Below are positions 1 through 52,639 of a stretch of 64,000 nt of DNA, one piece after another. The stretch is from assembly GCA_977030845.1 (NCBI GenBank), contig OZ365115.1, positions 31,000,001 through 31,064,000 on the forward strand, given 5' to 3'. The first letter of the stretch is position 1. The number at the start of each line of letters is the position of its first letter. Position numbers and translations under genes: made by a program. The notes beneath the pieces were generated by a model that saw only the letters and a program-made list of their open reading frames with translations, did no database searches and had not been told where the DNA came from. Source of the DNA: Fimbriosthenelais zetlandica (taxonomy: Eukaryota).

Positions 1-1865
1 TTTACAAAATTGCAGTGCTACACTATATACCCCACTCTCTACCACCGTGTAACTATAGTATTAGGCTGAGAGGTTTTTAAACAATCCTTTGAATCTGTCA
101 CAAGAAGTCACCTTAGGCTTCAGTTGTCAGACTGAGAAGCATTGGGTATTGTTTTCGTTATAAGAAATGGAGCTTTAGTAAAGCAGTTGTTGGTAACTGG
201 TGGCAGATTTGTGGACATGATACTATATTAAAAAATGGGCTTGACCAACTTGCACACAGTTCCTGCAAATACGGTGAAAAATAAAAACTTGAGATTCTAG
301 TAATCCGGAAAAGCTTGATTTTATAAGTGTACTAAAAAGATAATATAGAATCTTGATGCTCGTCTACATGTTCTCAGTTAGCATCATGGAGGGCATTAAT
401 CGATTTTTATCATGAATTATCTCACCATGATTCGTATGGTCAGCGCAAAGACCTCCCATAGGTATTGAGTATTCACAAAGCTTTGAAATGTTCTATATCG
501 TTGAAACTGTCGCCTAATGTTTTAAGTCTCAATGACAAAATAAAATTTGAATTGCAATGTGTCATAAATAGAAATTGCATAATATTTTTAAATGTCAATT
601 GATGCTGGTAATTTCTTGATTTGAAATGCCGTCAGGGTTCTATCATAAGGCCTAATAACCATATTACTATTTTGATCTCTGTTAAAAATCAATGATTTTG
701 TGATAATGTTAAATGTTAAATAGCTTCCATTGTTATTACTATCGATATCATGAATTGGTGTTAATGAATTACAGCATTTTGATGCACTTTGGGGATTTTC
801 ATCAGTGATTTTGGGGCCAACCATTAAATGAAAGATTTCCAGAGAATTCAGTGAAAACCTGAGAATTGTGCACCAATTAATAATTAAATAGTAGGCCTAC
901 ATCTGTCCACGCATACTGCACCTTGAACAATTAATAGTCACCAAAATGTATTTCGAGGACGTCAAAAGAATCTTCAGAAATGATCGATGGCTTTTAAACT
1001 ATTCCAGTTGTTATAGCAATGGGGCAGCGTTCTCAAGTATTTGTTTTTATTTAAAAGCTTGGTACTTCAGAATAAAGTCAGCAGAGATTATCTGACAATA
1101 ATCGTAGTTGTTATTATTGAAGAAATGTATTCTTAATGAAGTATAAGGCTCAAACCATAACAGTATAACTGGGATATTTAAACCAACAGCTAGCCAGTTC
1201 CTGCTTGTTACATCTTGTGATCCTCACTTTTTCACTAGATGGCAGAAATGAGACATGGATAAATTTCGGAGTAACATGTACGGACGACTTGAATACACCA
1301 GGGTGCAGTGGAGTTGTAGTCAATAGTATGGGGTTTAACGTCACTCTCAACAAAGGTGCAGTGGAAGGCCATTACATGTTAAAATTGATGAATAAAATCA
1401 TCTTGCGCCAGTAGGTTGCGTAGCTGTTATATATTTGAAATTCGTGATACAAAAAGGACAAATATAACTTTGCTGATTCAAATTAATCTTTATTGCCATT
1501 ACAACAATGGGGGTCCTAGCAAAGTAACTGCACATCTACCACATAGCTACTGACCATTACATCAATATTGATATGTGTCCTCCGCAAAGTAAAGCCAAAT
1601 TTGGATGCAGTCTCACTTCATTGGATTATAGCTTTTGTGGAGACGAGGTATATATATAATACTGTCACCATATCTGTCTCTTACATAATATATACGTACT
1701 TTTCTGTACATTTTCAATACGCTTCTGATGAATATACATCGCCAGTGAATTTTAATGCGCTTTCAAAAATGAGCAATTAGGACGAAATAAACTATTTACG
1801 ACTATTAAAAGTAAATAGATAATAAGATATAATTTATTTTGTGCACCACGAGACGATTTAACTTT

Positions 1866-4800
1866 TTAAGCACGTGAATTGCTGACAGTTAACATTCTGT
1901 TACTGTTAGAAGCCATTGACGTAGTAGCTGTTGATGGTGCTACATGAGAAGTGCCGATAGTACCAGCAGTTTGAAACTGAATATCGTTTTCGTTTAAGAA
2001 ATAGATGCAGTAAATCTTGGGGAAATACAGGCACAGGAGAGTGATACTGGCGTTAATTATCAGACAACTCATCAACAATGCAATTTGGTGAACGGCATAA
2101 AATGCAGTGAAGTAGGCTGGAAGAAAGACAAGCCAGAGGAATGTTGTTGTGGCGACGGAAACGAAGATGTACCAAGACTCGTTGAAGTTCTCAGGTAGTT
2201 TTCGTGTGAGGAATCCATAAGCAGCACAGGTTAGGATGAAGAGTAGGTTGAGACATAATGGAGGTAATAGACCTGTCAAGGGGAGACTGCAGAGCACTTC
2301 AACATATTTCTCGGTGTGTACCTGCATCCGGTAGATTGGATCGGGTGGGGCCTGAATGGCTGACACAATGCAGACCAACATCTGAAAGAAGTGTCAAATA
2401 AAATAGATTTAGAAAAAACTTTGAGACATAAGTCGCCGAAAAAAACAATAAGCTGAAGTATTCTGTACAGACCATTGTAAAGTTCTGTATTCTAAAGCAA
2501 GCTCTTATTTCTGCCCTTCGTATTTAATTCAACTGTTTATCGAACAAATTAAGTAAAAGACACATTTCACACATTTTACAGAAAGTAATATAAGCTGAAA
2601 CGACAACTAAATTTACAGGTACAGTGAAGAACAGGTGCTTAAAGTCCATACAATACAAAGGTGAACTAGTTACTTCTCATATTATTCAGGTAACAAGGGC
2701 TAGGATGTCATCGATTTTCTTCACTTTTTTATGAGTGCATTACATTTGAAAACAACGTGAGATAACGTGAGAGATTAAGGGTTAGGTAAGATGTAAAAAC
2801 ACAGCCATAGTATTTGGCATTCTGGCTGGGGAATTCTGCACACAACACATTTATGTAGGGTACGTAGCTATTCCTTTACGCATTATAAGTGCATTAACAG
2901 GTATAGTGTTGCAGGTAAGACGAAGCATACAGTCATAACTAGCCACACTGGTTCAACTGCTGTCAAATATTCAAACCCAGAGTATAAAGACCCTTAGAAT
3001 TAGTACTAATTAATTATAAATGGAAAGTCGGGTAAATTACTCACCTCCAGGCTGATGCATACAATGACCATGACAAGTTGTGCCTTCGTTCCAGTAAGGG
3101 CTGGTCGGATCTTCCCTTGTTTTCCAGCAGAAAAAATTCGGTACACCCTGTTCGTCTTGATCATCAATGGAGCATAGATGAAACTCACAGAGAGGTTGAA
3201 TCCGAATCTACCAAAGTAGCATGATATGGCTGAAGGGTGAAAAAGGAAATCAACAACAGTAACGTAGGCCAAGATGATCCCCCAGAGAATTATTCCCATG
3301 AGTTGTCGACTTGAAGCTTTTATAAGTTTTGCCTCTCGATTTTTCACGAAAATGATTCCAACGACAATACATAAGAGAAAACCAAGGCCAGTGATTGCAA
3401 GAATGGTCAATGTCAATGGAGCGGTCCATGCAAGAAAGTCAGGTTCTATTGGGAGACAGACTGTGGCACTTTCGTTATCAGGCCATTTGAAAAGAGGACA
3501 CACTTCACAATTGGTTTTGTTCTTGACAATGATTTCATTGTTTCGACATTTGCGACATTCCCAGCAACATGGAAGTTCCTTTTGGATAAAGTACTCTTTC
3601 AGTTTGCATGGTTGGCTGCAAATAGCCTCAGGAATGACTCCTTTCTTGGTGTCATTTCCAGTACGTGAAAACCAATGGAAGTTTTCATAGATGACCTCCA
3701 TTGATCCATCGATTTTGTCCCAAGTTGCAACAGCTACCACTTTTTTGGTTGTATGTTGATATTGTCTGAATACATATTTCCCAAGGAAATCTCCTTTTTT
3801 ATCAAATTGAATTTTTCCACTGAATCCATTGAGACTAGAATTTAGCATGTATTCGTGAAGTTCGCGGCCCTTAACACATTGTCTAACCAGAGTTCTGTTC
3901 CCAAAGGCTGCTGGACACTTATCTAATAAGAGCCTGTGCAAAGCATCAGCAAAAACATTAACTCCATCCATTGGCTTTCCTTCCCCAGATGTTTCAGGAA
4001 ATTTGTACGCATGAGGTTTTTCTGCAAACTTTTGGCATGATCTTTCACCATAGCTCTCATTCCATCGACAGTCGTGTGTCATTTCCCAAAAGTATGGAAT
4101 CCATGGGTTGTCTGGGGTGTTCACTGGGTTGATGGTGGCAAAGTGTTCACGAAATAAAGGGTCATAACTTATGTCTGGATCCACAACGACTACTCCATCA
4201 AAAAATATGCCTTCGTCACCAAGAGGGAAAGAGTCACTCCCTAACCACATATAGTAAGTTTCTCTGTTGTATTGTTCCAAAATGGATTTGAATTGGTAAA
4301 CCGGTGTGCTAAACAAGTAAGATATGATGACCCGGATGTTGTCAAATTTCATCAGTCCATCAACAATTTCATCTACAGTGTCCAGTGATGATCCTGATGG
4401 TAACATTGATGAATACGCAATGCAGACTCCTTTCCTTTTAGCTTGTCTTTCCACTTGTTTCGCACCATTTTCTCCATATGAACCTTCCATGTACAATAGA
4501 GCGGCATAATTCCATCCCAACTCAATCATAAAGTCAATTATCGCTTCGGCAGCAAAACTGTCAGGTGGAACTAGTCGCATTGTGTAGGCAAAACGGGTTT
4601 TGTCACTCAATTCATCACTTGTTGCCCAAGTCATTACTGTTGGGAACTCATACAAGGAGGAGACTGCTCCAACCATGACACCAGCTGTACTAAAGCTAGG
4701 TCCCACAGCGCCAACAATATTGTCAAAACTCTTCATATCCTTTTCGCATGTAATCAGTTCATCATCTGGGAATCGTTCTTGGTCACCTGCGTTTGGTAGA

Positions 4801-5141
4801 GCATATAACAATGCAGCTAAAGCCGCCAAATCCTGAGTACATATATCAGCAACAATGAAACCCAGGGAGACATTTGGCAGCAAGTCCAATCGAGCATTAA
4901 CTTTGTCAATCTGGTATCTAAATGCTTCAATAGCAACTATTGGGAAATCTGCGCTGAGTTTGTTTTTTGGATCACATATGATGGCAGATCTACCTGGCTT
5001 TTGTCCACTTACAGATCTCAAATATAATAAGTTGAGGTCCCTTTGGTAACCGAAACAGAGAGTATTCCAACCTTTCACTCCTGGATTACAGAGTACAAGC
5101 CCAAAGGCCTGGAAAAGTACAAGCCAGAGTAGTTGATGCAT
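1866..5141 (-). CDS. Class C GPCR, metabotropic glutamate receptor-like (copy A), 2 exons, 870 aa
   Basis: Exon 1 5141-3045 (ends SLE|gtgagt) and exon 2 2381-1866 (ttcag|ATG TTG), both phase 0. Signal peptide; Venus flytrap motifs (LLPNVSLG, GAVGP, ATSDELSDK, EGSYG, GSD); nine-Cys domain (CSQPC..CCWECRKC); 7TM with KTNRVYRIF, RKLPENFNE, FPKIY. Confidence 0.95.
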
Positions 5142-7313: not shown

Positions 7314-10098
7314 ATGATGCTAGGACTGGTAAGCACCTGCCTTGTCACTGCCATAATCGGAATTGTGACAAGCAGTCCTGACTTAGATTTGAAGCATCAA
7401 TTATGCTTTGCTCGACTTAGTGATTTAAATTTAATGCTCAATTTTGGCTTCAGCGACTACGATGGGTCACTTAAACCTTTGGCATGTGATCCCGATGAAC
7501 CCCTGTATGGAAGTCATATGTTTGTGTACATTGAAGCCTTCAGATATGCCATAGACATGGTGAACAAAAATGACAAATTGCTGCCCAATGTTTCACTTGG
7601 ATATATCATCATGGATAACTGCTGGCAAAGTATAGGAGCGCTGGCGACTGTCCTCTTCTCCTTGCCAGACAGAGATGATCCAGCCATTTTTCCAGACGAT
7701 GAGCTTGTCACATGCAAAAATGGATATAAAAGGTTCACGAATGTTTTCGGTGTGTTTGGACCTTCTTCAAGTTCACAGGCTGTCATGGTTGGAGGACTGT
7801 CAACATTATTCGAAATTCCGATGATTTTTGATACTGCAACAAGCGATGAATTAAGTGACAAGTCAAGGTACACCTACACAATGAGACTGATCCCACCTGA
7901 CCGGTTTGCGGCTGAGGCAATGATGGACATTATGATTGGATTTGGATGGAACTATGCATCAGTCCTGTACTATGAAGGTCCATATGGAGAAAATGGGGCA
8001 AAGCAAATTGACAGGAAGGCAAAGGAGACGGGAGTTTGTATTGGGTTTTCATTCATGTTTCCATCTGACTACAATGAACAAACTGCAGTCGAGGCGGCCA
8101 AACTCCTCTTGAGATTCAAACAGGCCAAAGTAATTCTTTCATTCATAGGATCAGGAGCAATCAGCATTCTCTTGCCTCTTCTTGAGGAAATGGGGCTTGC
8201 TGATCACTTTCTCTGGATTGGCAGTGACATTTTCCCCATCGGTGGGTATGGAGGAATAACAGATGGAAGCCTGAGGATAGATTTTAAATTAGGACATGAT
8301 CCACAATTCGATGATTATTTTGCGAAGCTGAACCCAGTCAACACGCCTGACAATCCATACATGCCCTACTTCTGGAAGTTGGCCCATGAATGTGACTGGA
8401 AGTCTACACATACAAACAATTCTTGTAATGACATCCAAGAAATTCCACATGGGCAAGAGATTTCTGAAAGAAGCCAGTATGGTAGAGTGTTGGATGGGGT
8501 GCAGGTTTTTGCAAGGGGGTTACATAACTTCATGATGGAAAAGTGCCCTGAGGCATTTGGAAACAGAAGGTTAGTGCGGGAATGCCTTGTGGGGAGAGAA
8601 CTTCATCAACACATGTTAAATGTGTCTTTTGTGGGAGTGACTGACGACATCAATTTTGATGAAAAGGGAGATTTGCGTGGGAAATTCCTTTTCAAACAGT
8701 ATCATGAGTACAACAAAGAATATGTCGTAGCAGCCACATGGAATAAGAATACACAAAAACTGGACATCATGTATGAAAACTTGCTCTGGCACTCTGGTGT
8801 ATATAATGACAGTAGGAGAGGAATGATACCTGAGGCTGTCTGCAGCAAACCTTGCAAGAATAAAGAATATTACATTCAGAAAGAGGTGGACTGTTGTTGG
8901 GATTGCAGAATCTGTCGCAACAATGAAATTATTGTTGATAACAAAACAAACTGTCTTTTATGTCCCTTGTATACATGGCCAGATGAAGAAACCAGCACAG
9001 TTTGTCAAAATATAAAACCAGATGTTCTTAAATGGACTTCTCCAATGACAATCACTATAGTGGCCGTCACAGGGACTGGTCTCCTTCTCTGTATCCTCAC
9101 AACAATTCTCTTTATACGACACAAAGACACCAAACTCATCAAGGCTTCAAGCAGAGAGCTGATGGCAATAATTCTGACAGGAATTGTACTCGCCTATATG
9201 ACTGTCTTTTTTATGTTAACTTATCCATCAGAAATCATCTGCTACATACAGCGATTTGGATTCAATCTTTCTGTTTCATTTATTTTCGCACCACTCATGA
9301 TCAAAACTAACAGAGTCTACAGGATCTTTACAGCAGGAAAGAAGGGAAGTAGGAAGCCTTTGTTCACAGGTATCCATGCCCAGATTTTCATCGTGGTGTT
9401 CTTCCTGCTGATTCAGGTATTTTCGATTTGTATTCTTATAGGAAAAGACTCACTTCGTTAAAGTTAAACAAGCAAAATATTTTCCACGTGATCCATCTTT
9501 TTTCACATTTTGCTCCGTGTCCATCCCATCAGCAATATACTTTCCATGTCAAAAAAGTATTTTTAAAATGATGTCTCTTTATTTCCAGGGGTTGTTGTGT
9601 CTAGTTTCTGCGATTCTCGCTGCCCCAAATCCAGTACTTCAGATGAGAGTGCACACAGTTAAGTACGTTGAAATATTATGCAGCCTGCCTTTGTCTGGAC
9701 TCCTGCCTCCTCTCTGCCTTAACTTGTTCCTCATCCTTATCTGTGCGGTATATGGTTTTCTGACCAGAAAACTGCCAGAAAACTTTAATGAGTCGTGGTA
9801 CATTTTCGTTTCTGTGGCAACAACAACGTTCCTTTGGCTGGTGTTTCTACCAGCATATTTCACAGCATTCTACGCCATTCATCAGGTGTTGCTGCTCTGT
9901 TGTTGTTTGATAATCAATGCTACAATGACACTTCTGTGCTTATATTTCCCGAAGATCTACTGTATATACTTTGTCAATGAAAGCGATATCCAGTTCCAAA
10001 CAGCAGGTACAATCGGGACGATGAAAATTGGACCAACAGTAGCGAACCTCAGCACATTACAGTCCAGTGCGACAACGGCAAGGTCATTTGAAACCTGA
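7314..10098 (+). CDS. Class C GPCR, metabotropic glutamate receptor-like (copy B), 2 exons, 870 aa
   Basis: Exon 1 7314-9416 (LIQ|gtattt) and exon 2 9589-10098 (ttccag|GGG TTG). Same intron position and same motifs as copy A; divergently transcribed from it. Confidence 0.95.
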
Positions 10099-12382
10099 AA
10101 ACTCTTACTAAAATGTGAATGACTCGATTATAAAAACTTAGATATTATATATTGACCAGTAATTACCGTGGACATTCTTAGACGATAAGACATTTCTCAT
10201 TGCGAAAGAAACATTCTAATGGAAAGAAAGGAGGGAAGGATAGCTACTTTCGTTATAGCATTGTCACGAAGTATGCAGATGATATGTAAAAATTAGGCCT
10301 AATATGAATTTTAATGTTGTAGAGCCGGATGTAGAGACTATTAGGAAGCTTAATTGTGTTCTAGAAGACCTCACAAAAGGTATCAAAGACAATGCTCTTG
10401 AAGACAAATAATACTGTATCAGATTTAGGGATGCATTTCCCTTATGATACGTCTTAATGTATATTGTAAAAAACATTCATAAGCTAATAAAATATGAACA
10501 GGTGGGGAAGTTGGATCATTTTTTGTTGTGCAGACGTTATGAGTCTCTTATCATGGTATTAATCAGACAGTAACCTTATATCAATCTCACGGATCTGAGG
10601 CTTTCTCAACAGCAATCTCGTCATTACGCCGAACTTTCTTGTAACAATGGTAGGCCTATATAGCCTAAAAATGAATAGCCTAAATATAGGACCATCCGCC
10701 ATTGATTCGTACAAATACTTTCATTCAGTAAGGCGTGGCTCTATTACCGGATTATAATGTATACTACTCAACAGGTACAAGCTGACGTATCAACTTGTAT
10801 ATTTAGCTCCTATATGATTGGCTGTGAACCCGCTAACAATGGTGGGTGCATGCTACAATAAAAGCTTATGAGAGCAATTTTAGACTTTGTCCATAATATT
10901 ATTTCAAACATTTGATTTTGTCCCCAGTTAGCCATTTGAAATGGCTCTTGAAAGCAGGTAAAACAGCTCATTTTAAAGGCATGGAAAGAGAGGATGCAGA
11001 TTTCAGTTTTTCAGATGAAACTCTCCAGTATCACACCTCCCCTTACCCATACTTCGACCCACCAACCTAAAAACACCCACGCAACTAAAATGCCGAGGGA
11101 AGCGAAGAAAAGTATAACGTGATGCAGATACTTGAACCAGAAAATAGACGCTCACGATTTAACACAGTTTTTAACCAATGCCACAGTTCGCTCCCCCTTT
11201 GGCTTGGAAAGTAACTCATAAACCATCAATAGCTATTATAGTATAGAGAGTGATTGGATTGGGTGCTCCTGAAATCCACTCATTTCTGACAGTGGGTGGG
11301 GTCTGCCCAATGAAAAGTGGGATTGGGTAAGCTTGCAACTCTTTGTACCTCTGAACACAAAATTCTCTTATACTTTAGACATCTTGACCAGAACTGGGAA
11401 AGAGACTTACCTGCGTTCCATCATTGTTGGTTGATCGTTGCCCCTGCCACTCCCACTGCTGACGGGTAGGCCTATTTGTTATGTATTTATTGTCCTTGGT
11501 CCTCCTCATATTGCTGGTCACTCTGCCTGACCAGTATAGTTATCCCGGCTCCTATTGACAGTCCCTCATTGAATCAATATCAGTACAGACACCTGGTGTT
11601 TTACATCTGAAGTAAACTGAAGAACTCTGGCAGGGCTCATTTTCCGATTCCAACAAAAGCCAAAGTATGACTTCGTCCAAACGTCAAACGTCAAACGTCA
11701 AGGATGGCTCCTATTAATGAAATTATAAAAAGATAAAGTAAATTATTCACTATGGACATTATAGCATTATGTTAGGCCTACTGTATAGTATATTATTATA
11801 GTTAGGACTATAAATATATTAAGCTACAATGGCTACACCGATATATAGAATTTTGTTGTTCATATACTGCCATATATTAAGTACATAGCCTAGCTACCAG
11901 AGGTAAATTCATGCATGCTTATTTTTATATAATTGTTATGTCATATAATTATGTTATAAATTGTATATTATGCCTGTCCATCCCATGCGGCACTTTCGGA
12001 TAAATCTTGTCATTTTAAATAATATTTCAAATTCACAAATCACTTAATCGTGTATTTCATGCGAGAAAATGCAGCCTATTATTTCTGTATCTATATATGT
12101 GTATCTTTTGTGATCCATGTCCTTATTTTAGTTTTATTTGTGTGCTATTCACAATCCCACATATATATGAAGAACTAGTTGGGAATTCATCCAGAACCGC
12201 AACAGCTTTAACGGGGTCATTCGCTCATCCATATCATGTATACAACATAGTACTTATATACCGTATAGGGTTCTTCATGATTTGTGTCCAAGTCCCGTCT
12301 TCACTCTTGTCCATTCAACAAGAATAGAAACATCTACCACCATGCTTACAGCCTTACATTCTTGAAAAACATCATAGTCTCA

Positions 12383-15025
12383 ATGAAACCGCTAGATGCC
12401 TTCAACATGTCTGATATATTCAGACACATCTTTCTGGGCATAGGATTGTTAGGATATCTCTGGATGTACACTCTATTACAAGTGGATACATATGAGGGTA
12501 CAGTTACAATTGTGAGCACTGGACAGCTAAGAATTAGGGATACTGTGGATGGGGGAAAGGATGTAGAGAAGGAAGATGAAGGGCCAGTATTGAGTAAATT
12601 TCAAGCCTTAGTTAGGTTATCAAATGGGGACATTAGAGAGGAGGATTTTAAAGCTGTACATCGCAAGAACAAAGTGTTTTTTCCTAATTTTATTCGAATG
12701 GATGATGGATGGCCTAGGAATAATCCATCTCGACCTAATGGTGCTGATCATAATGTGGACCGATTGGTAAGAGTTGGTTCCAATTTTGTTTTTTTTGAGA
12801 ATTCTCCCATTCTCGAAAATCCGACTGGTTCCGATTCACCATCAGCTGGCAAACAAAACACAGTAAACACATCCAAACCTTTACTTCAAATAAAATCACA
12901 GAAGAGCCTCGTGCAAAAACTTATAGATCAAACAAATGATCAGCCTCACTTACTTAGACCTGTTGTGGGAATTAATGAAGCAAACAGGTGGGGGCCTGTG
13001 AAGGAAGTCGATAGAAACATTCTAGCCATGGCAGCGGATAACCTACGCATGAAATCAACTGGATTCATTGGTAATTTATTTAATGAGGAGAAGGAAGACA
13101 TACCCATAGAAATTCAGAGAATTCAGAGATATGGATCATATATTGGACAAAGCAATGGAGAGAAGGTGGAAAATTCTCTTGGAAGTCGACAAGTACAGCA
13201 AAGAGTCCTACAGACTCAGAAAAAAGTGCCCAAACAACAAATACAAACAGCTTATAATATGGGCGAAAAAGTGGAGAGAGTACACACAGTTGTAGAAAGA
13301 GACCAGGCAAACATGAGGGATGGGGAGGTGGAGAATGATAAGAGCCACTTTAACGCTTATACAAACAACATGATTTCTAAAAATGCGATCATCAAAAATA
13401 AAATTATTACAAGTGCTGAAAAACACAGGGACGAAAGAGAGTTTGGGTACACTGCAATAAGGGGGAGAGCTGCAGTCAGCAAACCAGTCCAGGTAACCAG
13501 AAGCAGAGAACAAGGCAACGATTTAACCATATCAAAATCTGAAGAGAAAGTCGGATTCAAAAGGAGTAAAGAGAATGTTTGGTTAAAACCAATTTATGAA
13601 TGGAATACAGGGAGACATCTCAAAGCTTGGATTGTGAAAGAGGAATCCATGGACGTTCCACCTTCAACTAGTCACCTATTGTATAATGAAATCATAGTGG
13701 AAGCTTTCCGGTATTTCGGGTTTTATGTTATCATTTCACATTATCCCCCTGACGACTGGGACGTCAACTGGGGGGTACAAGAATCATATAACCCGCAGAA
13801 TACCCATTCTAGCGCGAATGGAATGTCAACTCCTGGCAATAAAATGAAAACGGTATATGGCTTACATGGGATGGAAAGCCTATGTTCAAAGGAATTGCTT
13901 CACGCCTACAGCGATATACCTAACATGAAAAAAGCGTTTAAACTCCCTGAACAAAAGGAGGCATTCTTTTCTCGTGCTCAAACTAATATCCAATATAACC
14001 CATATTGGTATGTTAAAAAATACTCCCATCCTCAATCATATTTGACTTCATTTAATGTGATGCTAGAAACAGTTCTAAATGAACCTTCGTTTGTCACTGA
14101 GTACTTGCCAAATCCATTATTGATGTATGGTAAGAGAGTTAGTGTAGGAATATATGTGATAGCAAGTAGAATTAATCCCTTAGTCGTCCATCTCTATACT
14201 AGAGAATGGCAAATACATTTATGTGAAAACGACTATCTACCTCTGACAAGAAAAAGTATGGAGGAAAAATGTGTTTTACCACTCCATACTGTGCCCAGAC
14301 TCAAAGAAGGATTTCAACGAAATCCAAAAACAACGGAGAAAATGTACTTCATTGATTTCCTAGAACAAAAAGGCCTCGGAGGAAGGTCTTTGGAATGGAG
14401 GATACAAAACGCAACTTCCCTTCTTTTCATGAATCATGAAAAACTAATAGCAAACCACAGTGAAACAAGGGGAAAACAAAACAATAATAGGAACAGGTAT
14501 GCCCTCTATAGGATAGATATAGAACTGGATCAGTCTGGCAAACCATGGTTTACAGCGATAGACAAAGATCCATTTAAAAATTGTTATTTGCAGACGAAGA
14601 GACAAATTGAAATGGTGCGCAACTTAGTCAAAGAGACTCTAATTTTGACGGGAGTCAGTTCGTTACACATCATATTAGATAAGTCACTGGAAGAACTAGT
14701 TCCAGAGGAGCAGTTGAACGCTGATATTGTTAATCGAGTCATGTGTTCGTCAGAAACCTGCAGAACTTGTCAAACATGGCAGTGTCACTTGTGCAGACAA
14801 TGTATGAATGAAGAAGAAAAGAACATGTTGAGACAGGAATGTCTAGAACACAGAAGGAAAGTTTCTTGGCTGAGAATATTGCCTCTGGCTTTTCGGGAGA
14901 GGAAATCAAATGTGAGATGGAGCTTTGAAAAAGACGCCAGATTTGAAAAATTGTCTCAAAGAAGCCAATGGTTGAGTGTATGGTACACCTGGAAATGTGC
15001 CATGGAGGACTCTTGGTGTATGTGA
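12383..15025 (+). CDS. Intronless tubulin-tyrosine-ligase-family (TTLL15-like) ATP-grasp protein with N-terminal signal anchor and long low-complexity stalk
   Basis: Single 2.6 kb ORF (first ATG 12383, alternative ATG 12407). Hydrophobic segment IFLGIGLLGYLWMYTLL. TTL-like blocks DWDVNW, EYLPNPLLMYGKRVSVGIYVIASRINPLVVHLY, YRIDIELD. C-terminal C-x4-C-x2-C-x4-C-x2-C-x2-C plus EHRRKVSWLRILP, which resembles invertebrate ttll-15 proteins as I recall them. Confidence 0.75.
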   Translation: MKPLDAFNMSDIFRHIFLGIGLLGYLWMYTLLQVDTYEGTVTIVSTGQLRIRDTVDGGKDVEKEDEGPVLSKFQALVRLSNGDIREEDFKAVHRKNKVFFPNFIRMDDGWPRNNPSRPNGADHNVDRLVRVGSNFVFFENSPILENPTGSDSPSAGKQNTVNTSKPLLQIKSQKSLVQKLIDQTNDQPHLLRPVVGINEANRWGPVKEVDRNILAMAADNLRMKSTGFIGNLFNEEKEDIPIEIQRIQRYGSYIGQSNGEKVENSLGSRQVQQRVLQTQKKVPKQQIQTAYNMGEKVERVHTVVERDQANMRDGEVENDKSHFNAYTNNMISKNAIIKNKIITSAEKHRDEREFGYTAIRGRAAVSKPVQVTRSREQGNDLTISKSEEKVGFKRSKENVWLKPIYEWNTGRHLKAWIVKEESMDVPPSTSHLLYNEIIVEAFRYFGFYVIISHYPPDDWDVNWGVQESYNPQNTHSSANGMSTPGNKMKTVYGLHGMESLCSKELLHAYSDIPNMKKAFKLPEQKEAFFSRAQTNIQYNPYWYVKKYSHPQSYLTSFNVMLETVLNEPSFVTEYLPNPLLMYGKRVSVGIYVIASRINPLVVHLYTREWQIHLCENDYLPLTRKSMEEKCVLPLHTVPRLKEGFQRNPKTTEKMYFIDFLEQKGLGGRSLEWRIQNATSLLFMNHEKLIANHSETRGKQNNNRNRYALYRIDIELDQSGKPWFTAIDKDPFKNCYLQTKRQIEMVRNLVKETLILTGVSSLHIILDKSLEELVPEEQLNADIVNRVMCSSETCRTCQTWQCHLCRQCMNEEEKNMLRQECLEHRRKVSWLRILPLAFRERKSNVRWSFEKDARFEKLSQRSQWLSVWYTWKCAMEDSWCM

Positions 15026-15902
15026 TAAATACAAAGACGATTTTCGTGTTAAAAAGTAATGTTACAAAAAACAATTCTCCAGTTATTGAAAGTATGTGTT
15101 ACGACTAGGCTACTACCTAAAGGTGTGAATGTTGGATAGAGAACATTATAAACTTTACATTTAGACCTATAAATTTATAATCATTAATTTTGGACAAAAC
15201 TGACTCATGATATTAAATATTAGGCTATGTAGGCCTATATTGCAACGGAAGACTGCATCAAAAGACCTCAACTCATACAAGTACATATATGTCTACTTTA
15301 CATTATTTTCGTTGGATACAAATCTAACTTGCGAATAAAATGTGGGCTATTAAGTGTTATAAAAATACTTCTGCCATTTACTCTTGACCACACCCGTAGC
15401 AACACCGTAATTAAGCCTAAGTTATTCTTTTCTTGTGAGGGGGCACCACCATTTTAGAGCAGCATCCTGTAAATTTTTCTATTTTCACTGGTAAATTCGT
15501 AAAAATTCTGTAGTGTAGCGTGAGGTAAGAGGCCCCCGGGGTAAGGCCCTTTTCCCCTGGTGGCTAAAATATGAACCATAGACCTATATCTGCGTTACAC
15601 TACCCCTTTGGATATAGGCCTAGAACGCTGATGTGAATGACGTCACTTTGCAAAGTGGCTACTTACTGTCGTGGGAGTTGAACGTGAGTTAGAAGCTGTC
15701 ACTTTGTCAGTGTTTATAATATGATTTAGTTAGTAGGCCTACCGGTATGAGGCGGAGATGCTCACGTACACGGGTCTGTCACAGTGTCAGCTGGTCAACT
15801 GATCAGAGGGAAGGGGGATGTTCTGCATGAATGACTCAGGGGAATGACCGAACTACTACACTATTCATGTATGCCTACATAGACATAAATAGAAATACTA
15901 AC

Positions 15903-16115
15903 TTGTAGAAGTGCTTGTAGATTAGGATAGCAGCCAGCAAGAGTTGCAGCTAGGATAACAGCATGAGCTGCTGCCCCACACGGAGGTGAAGCGAACTGCA
16001 TCTCGCAGTAGAACTCTCCAGTCGAAGGTAAAAAGTCACTTCCGGTGACTGAGTAAGTTCCGCCACACTCCGCAAAGTGGCGCTCCAGTCGTTCCTCCCA
16101 TTCTGTGCGGAGCAT
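15903..16115 (-). CDS. Possible first coding exon of an unidentified gene, head-to-head with aph-1
   Basis: ATG at 16115 opens 71 codons ending CAA|gttagt (plausible donor). No homology recognised. The region is GC-rich, so the ORF may be spurious. Confidence 0.3.
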
Positions 16116-16316
16116 GTAAGTTCCGCATCAGGTTTTTCACTATAATTCTTGGCTTAAAAATAATGTTTGGGCATTAATTACACATTAAAACTACATGAGG
16201 GGCGTCTTGTTATGTTTTACATACTAAAAGCTCTCTCCTGATATTTCACTTCGGAGCCGAGTCTTTTGTCTGCGGAACACCGGAAAAGGCATCATCGGCG
16301 AGGAAAACATCGCACG
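16116..16316. promoter_or_regulatory. CpG-rich housekeeping promoter and 5' UTR exon of aph-1
   Basis: CpG-rich patch with ETS-like CTTCCG/CCGGAA motifs. Donor cacg|gtgagt after 16316 and acceptor tttcag| at 17233, just upstream of the aph-1 ATG. Confidence 0.5.
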
Positions 16317-36911: not shown

Positions 36912-38985
36912 ATGATCAAGCAAAGTGAGGAGGCAGTACCTATACAGGACGTCCATGATACCCGGGATAATGTGGACACACAGAAGCAAAGTAGAGTGCA
37001 ATGGATCAAAGAGCACCGGCGCCAAATTACCCAGACTCTCATCCTCTATTTTGCATTCTTTGCGTTGGTGAGTGGCTTATGTTTTAGGCCTAATATAAGA
37101 TTCCATGGGTCATTATACAATGTTATTGCCTTTTTGTTCCAAAACTGATCCCTAGGGACATCAGTTCTATACATTCTCATTATCAGTCGAACATAATAGT
37201 CCCTTAAATGAGATGGTAATGAAGCACTTACGAAAGTTTATATTCTTCAGGGATTGGGATTTTCTGTAGTAGGACCAACGTTACTGGATTTAGGACGGAT
37301 CACCAATTCTGACACTCAAGCAGTCTCCTTCGTGTTCCTCTCTCGTTCAGTGGCTGGTCTTTCTGGTGCTATTTTGGCTGGAGCACTCATCCCACGTCTG
37401 AACCATTGGTTTCTACTTGCTCTCTCACTCCTGCTGATGGGGTCTACGAGCATAATTGTACCTCACATTACAATGTTGCCTCTCATGTGTATCCTCTTTG
37501 CATTTGGTGGACTGTCAGGAGGGTTTTATGATGCTGGTAAGTTTTTGTTATATCTCGATTTTCCATTATGATTTTTGTTAGCTTTGCTAGTCTGCCTTAA
37601 CCAATCTATAGCCAATTGAAAAATTGATGATTCTTTTTAAGTGCAGCATGGTAATGTCTTCAAGTTGATCATTCATTCATTTCTTCAGGAGGGAACATGG
37701 TCCTGCTGAAGGTTTGGGGCAAAGAGAACGGTCCATGGATGCAAGCTCTTCACTGTATTTTTGGTCTTGGTGCCTTGCTGGGTCCTCTCATTGCTGAACC
37801 TTTCCTGTCCGAGTCACGTGTCACAGAAGTAAGCACCACAGGAAGTTCCTTAATAGAGAACCTCTCAGCTGTTGTCACACAAGATCCTTCTGGTGCACTT
37901 AGAATGGTCTCCAACTCGTCTGACCCTGCCCATCCAGGTTACAATATGACATCTGATGAAATGAACAGATCCATGACCAATCAGACCCAAAACAAGCCAG
38001 TCAATCCAGTCCCATACAAGACTGACATAATTTGGGCCTACCTGATCATTGGGCTAGCCTGCATAACAGCCGGTTTACTTCTCATGTATGTCATGTTCTT
38101 CTGCAGTGAAATCAAGCTCTCCTGTCTGAACAAACTCAAGAAGGAATCCAAAGAAGAAAGGAATGAGGGTGATAGCAAACTTAAAAAGAAGAATCTGACC
38201 ATCACACTGATCGCTTTGCTGTTTGCTTTCTATCTGACATACTGTATACTCGAGATGAATGTTGGCAATTATCTCACGGCCTTTGCTGTCAAAGCATTAG
38301 GGTGGAGTGAGAGAGACGGTGCAAAAGTGACAGCTGGGTACTGGGGTACGTTTATGGCTGGTCGAGCATTAGGCATCCTAATAGTTAATTACATCAGTCC
38401 CGCCAAAATCATCATTTCTGATTTAATTATCAGTGTTCTGTCTCTGGGAACACTCATGTTCTTGGCACATGCACACACTGCTGTTTTGTGGGTTACTACT
38501 CTGGTCCTCGGCTTCGGGATATCCACTGTCTTTGCTACAGGTTAGTATTATTTTGCCTATTATGCAATTCCAAGGAAAGAATAATGTTATTCAAACGAGT
38601 GGATGGGTTCCCTGTTCCCTTCTTTCATCAATGTCACATAATAAATCAGAATAGAATGAAATGTTATCTTTTTGCAGGAATTACATGGGCTGAGATGTAC
38701 ATGAACATAAGTGGAGGTATCGGAGCTGTATTTATGATAGCTGCAGCTGGAGGTGAATTGGTAGGACCTCTCGTCATTAGTGCCTTATTTGAAAAGCTGG
38801 GGCCCCAAGCATTTGTTTACGTAATGTTCACTGCCGCATGTACATTGGTGGTTCTGTTTGGTGTAATGTTACTCGTAGCCAGGAAACTGGGCAGACGACA
38901 ACCAGACAACGAAGCTGAGAACCCTGAAGAAGTGGAACTCCAGAATCCTGTCACTGAAGACAGAACTGCAGTTCAGTTAAATTGA
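36912..38985 (+). CDS. MFSD4-like: MFS transporter, MFSD4/sodium-dependent glucose transporter 1-like, copy 1
   Basis: Exons 36912-37067, 37251-37536, 37689-38540, 38678-38985. GPTLLDL, GPWMQALHCIFGLGALLGPLIAEPFL, WGTFMAGR; about 12 TM segments. Confidence 0.88.
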
Positions 38986-43195: not shown

Positions 43196-45945
43196 ATGGA
43201 CCAAAGTGAGGAGGCAGTAGGCCTACCTGCCATACAGGACGTCCATGATAACCGGGATAATGTGGACACACAAAAGCAAAGTAGAGTGCAATGGGTCAAA
43301 GAGCACCGGCGCCAAATTACCCAGACTCTCGTCCTCTATTTTGCATTCTTCGCTATGGTGAGTGGCTTATAGTCTAGGAATTTCTAATTTAACCCTTTTC
43401 CCAGATGGCAATAAGCCTTTTGCATTGACATTGAAAAACGGCACAATACTTTCCTTGAGGCATTCCGAGTGAAAAACGGCACAATGCCTTTAGTGCATTA
43501 GGTGTTGACATTTGTCATAGAAAACCCTATAGCCTACACTTGGCAGTCTGGCCTTCTGGGAGGTCAAAATGTGCCAGGTGGTTAAAGTGAAAAACCTGCC
43601 ATCTATTTGGGAACATATATACGTAGAAATCTGCCGCCTGGATTGGGTTATGAGTTTTATATAGGCCTAGGGACATCAGGACTATGTGTACAGGTTCTTT
43701 TAAATGGTTGATTATTGTATATAGTTATGCAGTACCGGTATTTCCTTAAATGAGATGTGTATATGTATGATGTACTTATGAAAGTTTATATTCTTCAGGG
43801 ATTGGGATTTTCTGTAGTAGGACCAACGTTGCTGGATTTAGGACGGATCACCAATTCTGACACTCAATCAGTCTCCTTTGTGTTCATCTCGAATGCAGTG
43901 GCTTCTCTTGGAGGTGCTATTTTAGCTGGAGCACTCATCCCACGTCTGAACCATTGGCTTGTACTTGCTATCTCACAATTGTTGAGGGGGATTGCCACCA
44001 TACTTGTGCCTCATACTTCAATGTTGCCTGTCCTGTGTGTAGTCTTTGCATTCAGTGGAATGTCTGGGGCGGTTTATGATGCTGGTAAGTAATTGTTATA
44101 TATCTTGATTTTCCATTATGATTTTGAATAGCTTTGTTGGTCTGCCTTATCCAAATTATGGTCAACTGGAAAATTGATGATGCACAAAGTGTCTTTGTAA
44201 CTGATAAGAATGTAATTTACTTACGATTAATCCAATGCTAATGTCAAGTTCAGAATCATTCACTCAGTCAATAATTCATTCATTCATTTGCCTCAGGAGT
44301 GAACATGGTCCTGCTGAAGGTTTGGGGCAAAGAGAATGGTCCATGGATGCAAGCTCTTCACTGTATTTTTGGTCTTGGTGCCTTGCTGGGTCCTCTCGTT
44401 GCTGAACCATTCCTGTCCGAGTCACGTGTCACAGAAGTAAGCACCACAGGAAGTTCCTTAATAGAGAACCTCTCAGCTGTTGTCACACAAGATCCTTCTG
44501 GTGCACTTAGAATGGTCTCCAACACGTCTGACCCTGCCCGTCCAGGTTACAACATGACATCTGATGAAATGCACAGATCCATGATCAATCAGATCCAAAA
44601 CAAGCCAGTCAATCCAGTCCCATACAAGACTGACATAATTTGGGCCTACCTGATCATTGGGCTAGCCTGTATAACAGCCGGTTTACTTCTCATGTATGTC
44701 ATGTTCTTCTGCAGTGAAATCAAGCTCTCCTGTCTGAACAAACTCAGGAAGGAATCCAAAGAAGAAAAGAAAGATGGCGGTAGCAAACTTAAAAAGAAGA
44801 AACTGACCATCACACTGATTGCTTTGCTCTTTGCTTTCTATCTGACATTCTGTATAATTGAGGTGAATGTTGGCAATTATCTCACGGTCTTTGCTGTCAA
44901 AGCATTAGGGTGGAGTGAGAAAGACGGTGCTAAGGTATCTTCTGCATGCTGGGGTACCTTTACGGCTGGTCAAGCATTAGGCATCCTAATAGTTAATTAC
45001 ATCAGTCCCGCCAATATCATCATTTGTGATTTAACTATCAGTGTTCTGTCTCTGGGAACACTCGTGTTCTTGGCACATGTACACACTGCTGTTTTGTGGG
45101 TTACTACTCTCGTCCTCGGCTTCGGGATATCCACTGTATTTCCTACAGGTTGGTATTATTTTGCCTATTATGTAATTCCAACGAAAGAATAATGTTATTC
45201 CAACAAGTGGGTGGATGGCCAAGTTGGTTCGGGCCCAGGTGGCTATTTTGGGCCTCCTTTAAACCCAACTTCAACTTGCATTAGGTCATCTCCCTCCCTC
45301 CCTCCCTCTGCCCTCATACTACCCACCTATACCTCCTTCCCCCTCCCTTTGCCCTTCTCTTCCACCCCCCCCCCCCCTCTCCAATCTAGCCTTCTTTAAT
45401 TTGTCTCCCATCATTTCCCCTCTCCCTTAGCTCCTTTTCCTCTTCCTTCTATTTTTCCTCCACTCTATATTTATAGAGCCCATCTTTTATAGCATAAGAT
45501 CTTATTTTGTGCTCTATAGTTTCCAAAATACACCAGATTTCACCAAATAATGGGGTGGATCCCGAGTGGTTATATATTTTGCTTTTCCCTGTTCCCTTCT
45601 CTCATCATTCATCAATGTCGCACAAGAAAATCAGAATATATGGAAAGGAAATGAAATCTTATTGCAGGAATAACATGGGCTGAGATATATATAAACATAA
45701 GTGGAGGTATTGGAGCTGTCATTATGATAGCTGCAGCTGGAGGTGAATTGGTTGGACCTCTCGTCATTAGTGCCTCAATTGAACAACTTGGGCCCGATGC
45801 ATTTGTGTATGTAATGTTCACTGCCGCATCCACATTGGTGGTTCTGTTTGGTGTAATGTTACTCGTAGCCAGGAAACTGGGCAAACGCAACGAAGCTGGG
45901 AACCCTGAAGAAATGATCCTACTGTCTGGAGAGTCCTATCATTGA
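43196..45945 (+). CDS. MFSD4-like: MFS transporter, MFSD4-like, copy 3
   Basis: Exons 43196-43357, 43799-44084, 44297-45148, 45668-45945; intact frame; introns 1 and 3 are longer than in the other copies. Confidence 0.87.
45211..45583. other. Approximately 370 bp insertion with a long polypyrimidine tract in intron 3 of MFS copy 3
   Basis: Absent from the homologous 100-140 bp intron of the other four copies; C/T-rich from about 45288 to 45465. Confidence 0.7.
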
Positions 45946-46110: not shown

Positions 46111-46149
46111 ATGTATTTCAATCCTAAGGCACCAAGCTATATATGAACT

Positions 46150-46704: not shown

Positions 46705-48899
46705 ATGGACCAAAGTGAGCAGGCGGTAGGCCTACCTGCCATACAGGACGTCCATGAGGACACACAAAAGCAAATTAGAGTGCAATGGATCAAAGAGCAC
46801 CGGCGCCAAATTACCCAGACTCTCGTCCTCTATTTTGCATTCTTTGTTGGGGTGAGTGGCTTATAATATAAGAATTCCTAATTCAACCCTTTCCAAATGG
46901 GATATGCCTTTTGCAATCTCGGTGAAAAGCACAATACTTTCCTAAAGAACATATGCCTAGACATCTGCCGCCTGGATTGGGTTATGAGGTCTGTAAAGGG
47001 ACATCAGGTCTACGTGTACAGGTTCCTTTAAAGGGTTGATTATTATAGTCAGGGTGTACCGGTACTTCCTTAAATGAGATGTTAATTAACGTATGTAATA
47101 TGATACACTTAGATTAACGTACATTCTTCAGGGATTAGGAGCTTCTGTAAAAGGACCAACGTTGCTGGATTTAGGACGGATCACCAATTCTGACACTCAG
47201 TCAGTCTCCCTTGTGTTCCTTGCTAATTCAGCGGCTGCTCTTGGAGGTGCTATTTTGGCTGGGGCACTCATCCCACGTCTGAACCATTGGCTTGTACTTG
47301 CTCTCTCACTATTATTGAAGGGGATTGCCACCATATTTGTGCCTCGTATATCCATGTTGCCTGTCCTGTGTGTAGTCTTTGCGTTCAGTGGACTTGTTGG
47401 GGCGGTTTTTGATGCTGGTAAGTAATTGTTATATCTGGATTTTTCATTACGAATTTGAATAGCTTTGCTGATCTGCCTTTTAAAAATTATTATCAGTTGG
47501 AAAACCAATGATACCAGTATTTTTGTAACTGATCAGAATGTAATTTGCTATAATTAATATCAAAATATTAAAGTCAAGTTCAGAATCATTCATTCAGTCA
47601 ATGATTCCATTCATTTCCTCAGGAGGGAACATGGTCCTGCTGAAGGTTTGGGGCAAAGAGAATGGTCCATGGATGCAAGCTCTTCACTGTATTTTTGGTA
47701 TCGGTGCCTTGCTGGGTCCTCTCATTGCTGAACCTTTCCTGTCCGAGTCACGTGTCACAGAAGTAAGCACCACAGGAAGTTCCTTAAAAGAGAACCTCTC
47801 AGCTGTTGTCACACAAGATCCTTCTGGTGCACTTAGAATGGTCTCCAACTCGTCTGACCCTGCCCATCCAGGTTACAATATGACATCTGATGAAATACAC
47901 AGATCCATGACCAATCAGACCCAAAACAAGCCAGTCAATCCAGTTCCATACAAGACTGACATAATTTGGGCCTATCTGATCATTGGGCTAGCCTGCATAA
48001 CAGCCGGTTTACTTCTCATGTATGTCATGTTCTTCTGCAGTGAAGTCAAGCTCTCCTGTCTGAATAAACTCAGGAAAGAATCCAAAAAGAAAGATGGGGT
48101 TAGCAAAGTTAAAATGAAGAAACTGGCCATCACACTGATCGCTTTGCTGTTTGCTTTCTATCTGACATACTGTATAATTGAGGCGAATGTTGGCAATTAT
48201 CTCACGGCCTTTGCTGTCAAAGCATTAGGGTGGAGTGAGAAAGACGGTGCTAAGGTATCTTCTGCATACTGGGGTACCTATACGGCTGGTCGAGCATTCG
48301 GCATCCTAATAATTTATTACATCAGTCCCGCCAATATCATCATTTGTGATTTAACTATCAGTGTTCTGTCACTGGGAACACTCATGTTCTTGGTATATGC
48401 ACACACTGCTGTTTTGTGGGTTACTACTATGGCCCTTGGCTTCGGGATATCCACTATATTTGCTACAGGTTGGTATTATTTTGCATATCTAATGAATTTC
48501 AAAAGCCTGTATTGCCTTTATGATTCATTAATGTCACATATTTAATCTGAATATACATGTATAAAAATGAAATTGAATCTTTTTGCAGGAATTACATGGG
48601 CTGAGATGTATGTGAACATAAGTGGAGGCATTGGAGCTATATTTATGATAGCTGCAGCTGGAGGTGACATGATAGGACCTCTCGTCATAAGTGTTTTATT
48701 TGATAATCTGGGGCCCCATACATTTGTTTACGTAATATTCACTGCCGCATGTACACTTGTGGTTCTGTTTGGTGTAATGTTATTCATAGCCAGGAAGCTG
48801 GGCAGACGTCAACCAGACAACGAAGCTGAGAACCCAGAAGAAGTGGACCTCCAGAATCCTGTCACTGAAGATAGGACGGTTGCACATGAACTAAACTGA
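46705..48899 (+). CDS. MFSD4-like: MFS transporter, MFSD4-like, copy 4
   Basis: Exons 46705-46851, 47132-47417, 47623-48468, 48589-48899; intact frame. Confidence 0.88.
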
Positions 48900-50289: not shown

Positions 50290-50525
50290 TTTCCACACTA
50301 ATTATATTTGGTTAGCTGTTAGTAGGGCAAAAGTGCAGTGTCTCATGTGCTAACATTTGTGTATATTTCACCCAGATCAGACGAGGCTAACTATTATGGT
50401 CTATTAATTATACTTAGTTGGGTATTTGATGCATGACAAACCTGTTATGATTTTGGGTTTAAGCCTAACCATCACCTTAGACGTTTGGACAATTCATAAG
50501 GATTATAAAAACAATACTTACAAGG

Positions 50526-52639
50526 ATGGACCAAAGTGAGGAGGCAGTACCTATACAGGACGTCCATGATACCCGGGATAATGTGGACACACAGAAGCAA
50601 AGTAGAGTGCAATGGGTGAAAGCGCACCGGCGCCAAATTACCCAAACTCTCGTCCTCTATTTTGCATTCTTTGTTGTGGTGAGTGGCTCATAATTCGATT
50701 TGCTTTTGCAATCTCGGTGAAAAACGGCACAATACGTTCTTAAAGAACATAGGCCTAGACATCTGCCGCCTGGTTTGGGTTACGAGTTCTGTATAGGGAC
50801 ATCACGTCTATGTGTACAAGTTCCCTTAAAGGCCTGATTATAATAGTCATTGTGTACAGGTATTTCTTAAATGAGATGTTAATTAACGTATGTAATATGA
50901 TACACTTAGATTACCGTAAATTCTTCAGGGATTAGGAGCTTCTGTAAAAGGACCAACGTTGCTGGATTTAGGACGGATCACCAATTCTGACACTCAGTCA
51001 GTCTCCCTTGTGTTCCTCTCTAGTTCATCGGCTGCCCTTGGAGGTGCTATCTTGGCTGGGGCCATTATCCCACGTCTGAACCATTGGCTTGTACTTGCTC
51101 TCTCACTATTATTGAGGGGGATTGCGAGCATACTTGTGCCTCGGACATCAATGTTGCCTCTCCTGTGTGTAGTATTTGCGTTCAATGGATTTTTTGGGGC
51201 GGTTTATGATGCTGGTAAGTAATTGTTATATCTTGATTTTCCATTTAGAATTTGAATAGCTTTGCTGGTCTTCCTTATCCAAATTATGGTCAATTCAAAA
51301 ATCAATGATGCACAAAGTCTCTTTGTAACTGATCAGAATGTTATTTGCTATCATTAATATCAAAAGTCAAGTTCAGAATCATTCAGTCAATGATTTCATT
51401 CACTTCCTCAGGAGGGAACATGGTCCTGCTGAAGGTTTGGGGCAAAGAGAATGGTCCATGGATGCAAGCTCTTCACTGTATTTTTGGTATCGGTGCCTTG
51501 CTGGGTCCTCTCGTTGCTGAACCTTTCCTGTCCGAGTCACGTGTCACAGAAGTAAGCACCACAGGAAGTTCCTTAATAGAGAACCTCTCAGCTGTTGTCA
51601 CACAAGATCCTTCTGGTGCACTTAGAATGGTCTCCAACTCGTCCGACCCTGCCCGTCCAGGTGACAATATGACATCTGATGAAATGCATAGGTCCATGAC
51701 CAATCAGACCCAAACGAAGCCAGTCAATCCAATCCCATACGAAACTAACATAATTTGGGCCTACCTGATCATTGGGCTAGCCTGCATAACAGCCGGTTTA
51801 CTTCTCATGTATGTCATGTTCTTCTGCAGTGAAGTCAAGCTCTCCTGTCTGAACAAACTCAAACAGGAATCTAAAGAAGAAAAGAAAGATGGGGTTAGCA
51901 AACTTAAAAAGAAGAAGCTGACCATCACACTGATCGCTTTGCTGTTTGCTTTCTATCTGACATACTGTATAATTGAGGTGAATGTTGGCAATTACCTCAC
52001 GGCCTTTGCTGTCAAAGCATTAGGGTGGAGTGAGAAAGACGGTGCTAAGGTATCTTCTGCATACTGGGGTACCTTTACGGCTGGTCGAGCAATAGGCATC
52101 ATAATAGTTAATAACATCAGTCCCACCAATATCATCATTTGTGATTTAACTATCAGTGTTCTGTCACTGGGAACACTCATGTTCTTCGTATATGCACATA
52201 CTGCCGTTTTGTGGGTTACTACTATGGTCCTCGGCTTCGGGATATCCTCTGTATTTGCTACAGGTTGGTATTATTTTGCCTATCTCATGAATTTCAAAAG
52301 CCTGCATTTGCTTTGCGATTCATCAATGTCACATAATAAATCTAAATATACCTTTTTGCAGGAATTACATGGGCTGAGATGTATCTGAACATAAGTGGAG
52401 GTATTGGAGCTATATTTATGATAGCTGCAGCGGGAGGGGAAATGGTAGGACCTCTTGTCATAAGTGCTTTATTTGAAAAGCTGGGGCCCCATACATTTGT
52501 GTATGTAATGTTCACTGCCGCATGTGCATTGGTGGTTCTGTTTGGTGTAATGTTACTCGTAGCCAGGAAACTGGGCAAACGCAACGAAGCTGAGAACCCT
52601 GAGGAAATGGTCCTACTGTCTGGAGAGTCCTATCACTGA
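50526..52639 (+). CDS. MFSD4-like: MFS transporter, MFSD4-like, copy 5
   Basis: Exons 50526-50678, 50929-51214, 51412-52263, 52362-52639; intact frame. Confidence 0.88.

Follow-up and report, generated by a model that had tools for sequence, protein, structure and literature searches.

Genomic context

The stretch analysed here comprises 64,000 nucleotides of the Fimbriosthenelais zetlandica genome (GenBank assembly GCA_977030845.1, contig OZ365115.1, positions 31,000,001 to 31,064,000 of the forward strand), hereafter the window. It carries a pair of family-C G protein-coupled receptor (GPCR) genes, a TTL-like open reading frame (ORF), an Aph-1 gene, and five tandem copies of an MFS transporter gene that occupy 36.8-52.6 kb and are 74-92% identical. 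Spread through the window is the palindromic octamer TAGGCCTA, a GGCC core with a TA on either side, and the copies of this word are probably excision scars of a TA-targeting cut-and-paste transposon with GGC/GCC ends. We refer to the octamer and to the related words described below as scar words.

Abundance and form of the octamer

Exact copies of TAGGCCTA number 22, all at the coordinates collected in Table 1, against an expectation of 0.58 in 100 dinucleotide-preserving shuffles (maximum 3) or of 0.72 under a dinucleotide model, in agreement with the claim of the initial annotation that at least 22 copies are present where fewer than one is expected. The octamer ranks first among the over-represented 8-mers of the window (z ~25), and its excess is a real and strong feature. 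Because 44 of the 51 occurrences of AGGCCTA lie inside TAGGCCTA, the unit is the whole palindrome; among words of the form NN-GGCC-NN in the window the TA..TA form alone is enriched, and GGCC by itself is not enriched (140 occurrences, 119 expected). The 40 bases on each side of the copies have no sequence in common, nor is there any base preference flanking the word beyond the TA, and since the flanks are unrelated the octamer is not a dispersed repeat. The copies represent 21 independent sites, those at 43218 and 46727 being paralogous copies of one event, and scar density tracks neither GC content nor the observed/expected ratio of CpG. A reading of the octamer as a telomere fusion (TTAGG joined to CCTAA) was rejected, as T and A are not enriched beside it, and the words GGCTAGCC, GGACGTCC, GGGGCCCC and CCGGCGCC were likewise set aside, their apparent enrichment being due solely to their presence in the five MFS copies.

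The octamer is accompanied by two 7-mers, TAGGCTA and TAGCCTA, which together occur 22 times in the window against 6.3 expected. The earlier observation that these sister words cluster and chain with TAGGCCTA holds, with chains at 10651-10682, 15221-15237, 16740-16774, 35268-35282 and 35409-35436. A second family of the same build consists of TACCGGTA (7 occurrences, 0.33 expected) and its 7-mers TACCGTA and TACGGTA (9 occurrences, 2.9 expected). In addition, TACATGTA is mildly enriched (7 against 1.8) and chains with TAGGCCTA, with no enrichment of its 7-mer sisters TACAGTA and TACTGTA (13 against 9.3). The excess is divided between 8-mer and 7-mers in a ratio of ~58:42 in the TAGGCCTA family and ~52:48 in the TACCGGTA family. 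A 7-mer spectrum in which either centre base appears beside the longer form is expected of 3-nt overhangs and is present in the GGCC and CCGG families, and the 8-mer/7-mer pattern of both families is the expectation for such overhangs after excision of the mariner/Sleeping Beauty type. In the literature searched, we found neither TAGGCCTA nor an abundance of words of the form TA-N4-TA attributed to scars of transposons.

Birth of the octamer in paralogous transporter genes

Comparison of the five MFS copies shows how the word arises. Copies 3 and 4 carry TAGGCCTA (43218 and 46727) at a site that reads TA in copy 2 (about 40506), and intron 1 of copy 3 carries TAGGCCTA at 43662, where the same site is TA in copy 5 (50794) and AA in copy 4. 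The MFS alignment thus confirms the filled and empty sites proposed in the initial annotation for 43662 and 50794. When 5-7 bp gaps were collected from all ten pairwise MFS alignments, just two TA-N4-TA events were present, and both are GGCCTA. These clean indels between TA and TAGGCCTA mean that the word was written by six added letters at a TA, and TAGGCCTA is therefore a mutational scar, GGCCTA added at a pre-existing TA. The scar at 43218/46727 is the sole scar in coding sequence and is in frame, adding Gly-Leu to exon 1 of copies 3 and 4; exon 1 of all five copies is open, has a length divisible by three and ends at a GT donor.

The scars in these genes are of differing age. For instance, the scar at 43662 is specific to copy 3, and the one at 43218/46727 was already present before copies 3 and 4 diverged. 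The scar at 50750, in intron 1 of copy 5, is also old, since its counterpart in copy 4 (46952) has decayed to TATGCCTA. The process therefore spanned a neutral divergence of 10% or more. In the case of the second family, TACCGGTA is common to copies 3 (43733) and 4 (47057), while copies 2 and 5 have TATCGGTA and TACAGGTA, respectively, at the same column. Each of these differs from TACCGGTA within the CCGG core, which holds a CpG, and such a scar may decay faster, perhaps via CpG methylation.

A separate observation on intron 1 of copy 3 is that ~180 bp between 43400 and 43640 are without counterpart in copies 4 and 5; this extra stretch contains a local duplication of a GTGAAAAACGGCACAAT-like segment and a TAGCCTA at 43530.

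Distribution, hot zones and chaining

For the analysis of distribution the scars were pooled into a set of 67 occurrences of seven scar words. None of the 67 lies in a long ORF, where 15.6% of TA sites are found (P ~1e-5). More than half of the scar words (38 of 67) and of the octamers (13 of 22) lie in three zones between genes, each upstream of a gene start (Table 1), that together hold 13% of the TA sites; the zones were delimited after the data had been seen, and the P value for clustering is descriptive only. Within the zones the sites are scattered 0.2-2.7 kb upstream, at no fixed distance from the gene start. The 2.2 kb upstream of Aph-1 form the densest mixed-family scar field after that at 34-37 kb.

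Scar words also lie close together on a fine scale, 12 pairs being 12 bp or less apart where 0.94 would be expected, or ~2.8 if local density is held fixed. Chains of mixed family are found at 15734-15747, where TAGGCCTA and TACCGGTA share a TA, and at 16740-16774, 34227-34242 and 35409-35436. Such chains reflect either a preference for the TAs of existing scars as targets, or compound products of a single repair event. The exclusion from ORFs, the three upstream hot zones and the statistics on fine-scale chaining are new to the present analysis.

Two of the compound scars, at 10651-10668 and 15220-15237, are mirror images of one another (octamer, two bases, 7-mer, A; 15 of 16 bases), and bracket, 4.6 kb apart, the intronless 913-aa ORF with the TTL domain. 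The pair was considered as terminal inverted repeats (TIRs) and rejected, the similarity ending after the scar words, and we read it as more probably a coincidence of two scar clusters than a mobile unit.

Table 1. Positions in the window of the octamers, compound scars, hot zones and candidate element remnant
Feature	Positions	Strand	Context
TAGGCCTA octamer	892-899	.	
Hot zone 1	10099-12283		Intergenic, upstream of TTL-like ORF (12284-15025); 8 scar words
TAGGCCTA octamer	10294-10301	.	Hot zone 1
Compound scar: TAGGCCTA, TA, TAGCCTA, second TAGCCTA	10651-10682	.	
TAGGCCTA octamer	11467-11474	.	Hot zone 1
TAGGCCTA octamer	11773-11780	.	Hot zone 1
Hot zone 2	15026-17260		Intergenic, upstream of Aph-1 exon 1 (ATG 17261); 13 scar words
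Compound scar: TAGGCTA, TG, TAGGCCTA	15221-15237	.	Mirrors the one at 10651
TAGGCCTA octamer	15615-15622	.	Hot zone 2
TAGGCCTA + TACCGGTA	15734-15747	.	Overlapping on one common TA
Chain: TAGGCTA + TACATGTA on common TA, then TAGGCTA + TAGCCTA + TAGGCCCTA	16740-16774	.	
TAGGCCTA octamer	17085-17092	.	176 bp upstream of Aph-1 ATG; variant TAGACCTA overlapping at 17079
TAGGCCTA octamer	24607-24614	.	
Weak candidate element remnant, 74 bp: TA|GGCCTG..CAGAGC ... GCTCTG..CAGGCC|TA	27987-28060	.	Hairpin
TAGGCCTA octamer	29376-29383	.	
TACATGTA then directly TAGGCCTA	34227-34242	.	
Hot zone 3	34238-36911		Upstream of MFS copy 1 (ATG 36912); 17 scar words
TAGGCCTA octamer	34853-34860	.	Hot zone 3
TAGGCCTA octamer	34923-34930	.	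Hot zone 3
TAGGCCTA then directly TAGCCTA	35268-35282	.	
Chain: TACCGGTA, TAGCCTA, TAGGCCTA	35409-35436	.	All in 28 bp
TAGGCCTA octamer	35585-35592	.	Hot zone 3
TAGGCCTA octamer	37085-37092	.	Start of intron 1, MFS copy 1
TAGGCCTA	43218-43225	.	Exon 1 of MFS copy 3 (exon 43196-43357)
TAGGCCTA	43662-43669	.	Intron 1 of MFS copy 3, 6-bp insertion
TACCGGTA	43733-43740	.	MFS copies 3 and 4 (47057)
TAGGCCTA	46727-46734	.	MFS copy 4, exon 1 (46705-46851); paralogue of the scar at 43218
TAGGCCTA	50750-50757	.	Intron 1 of MFS copy 5

Decay of scars and rate of their production

Words that differ from TAGGCCTA by one mismatch occur 41 times against 18.6 expected, an excess of ~22 that is close to the ~25 predicted from constant production of scars and neutral decay. 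Decayed copies are thus about as common as neutral decay predicts, in the hot zones as well. If a steady state is assumed, the observed counts give 8 x 22 / 5055 = 0.035, such that under this inferred model the rate of scar formation per TA would be about 0.035 of the per-base substitution rate, or, scaled to the genome, ~0.003 scars for each new point mutation in a gamete. As the estimated rate is low, a low-copy element with ordinary rates of excision would suffice, and a low copy number would in turn explain why the element is unseen in 64 kb. The very active element envisaged in the initial annotation is consequently not required, a handful of copies acting over a long time being enough to reach this rate.

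The decayed variants are unevenly distributed between strands. On the + strand, variants changed in the left half comprise TAAGCCTA (6 occurrences), TAGACCTA (6) and TATGCCTA (5), with 0, 2 and 0 occurrences, respectively, of their reverse complements; examples of left-half variants are found at 15412, 23220, 28149, 34540, 36444 and 50460. Likewise, GCCTA exceeds TAGGC, 89 to 67.

A proposed excision mechanism

From what is observed, namely insertion at TA, word families that cluster and avoid ORFs, and one in-frame case in an exon, we infer a transposon, the sequence of its ends, a 3-nt stagger and a repair route. The source would use Tc1/mariner-like chemistry, have the ends 5'-GGC...GCC-3', and duplicate the TA on insertion. 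On excision, the non-transferred strand would be cut 3 nt inside each end, leaving two identical GGC-3' overhangs on the donor; a stagger of 3 nt is that of mariner and Sleeping Beauty. Pairing of the last two overhang bases (GC with GC) and filling of the gaps would yield TA-GGCC-TA, whereas full overlap of the overhangs with a central G-G mismatch would yield TA-GGC-TA or TA-GCC-TA. By the same route, a second element with CCG...CGG ends would give rise to TACCGGTA and to TACCGTA and TACGGTA. The scars would then drift and decay as neutral DNA, be purged from coding sequence unless in frame, and build up at the preferred landing sites of the element, here upstream of gene starts.

Footprints of comparable form are known from other elements. 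Those of the Tc1/Tc3 type have the form TA-CA-TG-TA, and share with TAGGCCTA the layout of an 8-bp TA-N4-TA palindrome to which both element ends contribute; the enrichment of TACATGTA itself in the window is mild, much weaker than that of TAGGCCTA and without enriched 7-mer sisters. In footprints of Sleeping Beauty and mariner, terminal nucleotides of the element are enclosed by two copies of TA, where an empty site has just one; the nucleotides left by Sleeping Beauty are canonically 'cag' or 'ctg' (PMC5224488). The 7-bp form with either centre base is likewise found here, as GGC or GCC, but the core differs, being GGC/GCC and CCG/CGG rather than CAG/CTG. A further difference is that the 8-bp palindrome dominates in the window, where it is the top 8-mer; we attribute this dominance to self-pairing of the overhangs over 2 bp. 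A more distant parallel is provided by the TA-bounded internal eliminated sequences of Paramecium (PMC3464196), which are of Tc1/mariner ancestry and are also removed from DNA; there, however, excision is precise, to one TA, and takes place in the ciliate macronucleus, whereas here a scar remains and is inherited in an animal germline.

If the octamers are scars of a transposon, the genome holds a readable and datable record of transposon traffic, with one uniform scar per vacated site. It would then be possible, without the element, to measure where a DNA transposon prefers to insert, here upstream of gene starts, how long it has been active, as some scars predate the gene duplications and others postdate them, and what share of indel mutation it contributes, here two of the 6-bp indels between paralogues. 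Such scars can also add codons, as with the Gly-Leu in two MFS transporter copies. In addition, the end sequence TA|GGC...GCC|TA is predicted for an element yet to be located in this genome. The system is notable for the abundance of the word, for its promoter-proximal clustering and for the element that is still missing.

Search for the source element

The search for TA-flanked elements with TIRs of the form GG(C)...(G)CC, proposed in the initial annotation, was run in the window. Neither TAGG...CCTA pairs with 16-nt TIRs nor short-range TAGGC...GCCTA pairs revealed a source element in the 64-kb window, all TA...TA pairs with 14-nt TIRs gave no more hits there than the reversed-sequence null, and clustering of every TA|GG terminus in the window, like the short-range scan, recovered paralogues only and no repeated terminus. 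The absence of the element from the window, already noted from the initial reading of the sequence, is thereby borne out.

One stretch, at 27987-28060, is a weak candidate for an element remnant: its left end, TA|GGCCTG..CAGAGC, is mirrored before the right-hand TA and the DNA would form a hairpin (z = -3.4). A solo end resembling this candidate lies at 26503-26517. The 27987-type end has four matches within three mismatches, a number equalled in 4 of 100 shuffles.

Elements of the PHIS group (PIF/Harbinger, ISL2EU) have TIRs that usually start with GG, and target AT (ISL2EU) or TWA (Harbinger) (PMC4482050). The group resembles the predicted source in its GG-starting ends, and the window holds one AT-flanked, GG-ended miniature inverted-repeat transposable element (MITE), but its AT and TWA targets set it apart, as scars at such targets are not enriched here: ATGGCCAT occurs 0 times (1.7 expected), AATGGCCATT and TTAGGCCTTA 0 times and TAAGGCCTAA once. 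The MITE, at 54290-55034 (~745 bp), has 77-nt imperfect TIRs starting GGGGTAACTCCAC, AT on both sides and internal GTGGAGTTA-like subterminal repeats, and its AT target and GG start fit an ISL2EU-like element. The interval 54302-55017 was itself considered as a source and rejected, being the inner part of this MITE, whose inverted repeat reaches the GGGGTAACTCCAC ends and AT flanks.

The proposal of a TA-targeting GGC...GCC element as the source stands in part. Insertion at TA, the sister 7-mers and the parallel CCGG family match footprints of the Tc1/mariner type, but several points weigh against it. None of the four scans recovered a TA-flanked GG(C)...(G)CC element from the 64-kb window, genome-wide absence being beyond the reach of such a window, and ISL2EU/Harbinger elements were rejected as an alternative source of the scars, AT- and TWA-bounded scars not being enriched. 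The well-known TA-targeting families start with CA or similar rather than GGC. The chaining at 12 bp or less (12 pairs against ~2.8) requires an extra assumption, either re-insertion at scar TAs or compound repair, and the clustering upstream of gene starts would be compatible with a promoter motif, too. Lastly, no explanation was found for the asymmetry of left-half variants on the + strand, 17 against 2 at independent sites.

Alternative explanations

Promoter clustering keeps alive, as a minority rival, the reading of TAGGCCTA as a palindromic, promoter-proximal site for a dimeric DNA-binding protein, its excess arising from selection on the motif regardless of the mutation by which a copy originated. 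The word is a perfect palindrome with several copies per zone, and the majority of the octamers (13 of 22) and of the scar words (38 of 67) lie in the three upstream zones, one of which is at a housekeeping gene, Aph-1. The Drosophila DRE, TATCGATA, is a palindromic promoter motif with a similar layout, a TA-N4-TA palindrome in multiple copies upstream of housekeeping-type genes, but it differs in that copies here come from a 6-bp insertion, are accompanied by enriched 7-mer deletion variants, undergo neutral-looking decay and are also found in introns and an exon. A motif under selection would not account for new copies being born as 6-bp insertions at TA rather than by point changes, or for 7-mers that lack one centre base and break the half-site spacing, yet are equally enriched and co-clustered. 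Second and third TA-N4-TA families (CCGG and CATG) co-cluster with the first, decayed copies are near the neutral prediction even in the hot zones (a halo of ~22 against ~25), the sites lie 0.2-2.7 kb upstream at no fixed distance, and further copies are in introns and an exon, all of which make a promoter motif unlikely. Also quite unlikely, in our view, is a transposon-free route, in which the repair of recurrent breaks at TA in open chromatin adds a few letters, either templated or specified by an enzyme, for instance through a domesticated transposase-like nuclease or synthesis of the polymerase-theta type. Such repair would be in keeping with the lack of an element in the window, with compound scars that resemble templated repeats of the same few letters, and with the use of the same hot spots by all families at a scale of <12 bp. 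However, we know of no repair route that writes a fixed GGCC or CCGG at TA untemplated; the 8-mer and two 7-mers are exactly those that identical 3-nt overhangs predict, and the simplest account of the different cores (GGCC, CCGG, CATG) is that they come from different element ends.

Germline-limited, TA-bounded elements might be cut from somatic DNA in development, so that a sequenced somatic genome shows scars only, and both the absence of the element from the window and the high uniformity of the scars would follow. The scars, however, show the inheritance and decay of ordinary DNA, one being common to paralogues and mutated derivatives aligning to intact copies; an ordinary low-copy element accounts for the absence equally well, and to our knowledge programmed DNA elimination has not been reported in an annelid- or mollusc-like group, leaving this explanation remote. 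In a broader form, the scars would be the visible trace of a system with no elements in the assembly, based either on germline-limited TA-bounded DNA with GGC/GCC ends that is removed in development, or on a transposase-type nuclease, retained by the host, by which TA sites in the open chromatin of promoters are repeatedly cut and re-sealed; this would account for the element not being found, but we consider it a long shot. An artefact of sequencing or assembly, such as linker or adaptor remnants, has the uniformity of the word in its favour and nothing else, and is practically negligible given that the word is always at TA, is common to diverged paralogues, has decayed derivatives alongside it, and is excluded from ORFs save for one in-frame case.

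Neighbouring genes

The TTL-like ORF (12284-15025) has a single relative in a protein search, at 42% identity. Exons of Aph-1, a gamma-secretase subunit, were searched one by one: that at 18152-18466 (+) matches Pfam PF06105, and the ORF at 17261-17377 (+) we take to be exon 1, from its typical N-terminus. Towards the start of the window lie two divergently oriented family-C GPCR genes, at 1866-5141 (-) and 7314-10098 (+), each with the domains ANF_receptor, NCD3G and 7tm_3 and each split once within the seven-transmembrane region; they are 65-70% identical in DNA sequence, and their ORFs are free of scar words. Two adjoining ORFs at 33609-34237 (+) have weak matches to Pfam Lipase (E values of 6e-3 and 1e-5, both under the gathering score), and may be exons of a lipase-like gene that ends just before hot zone 3.

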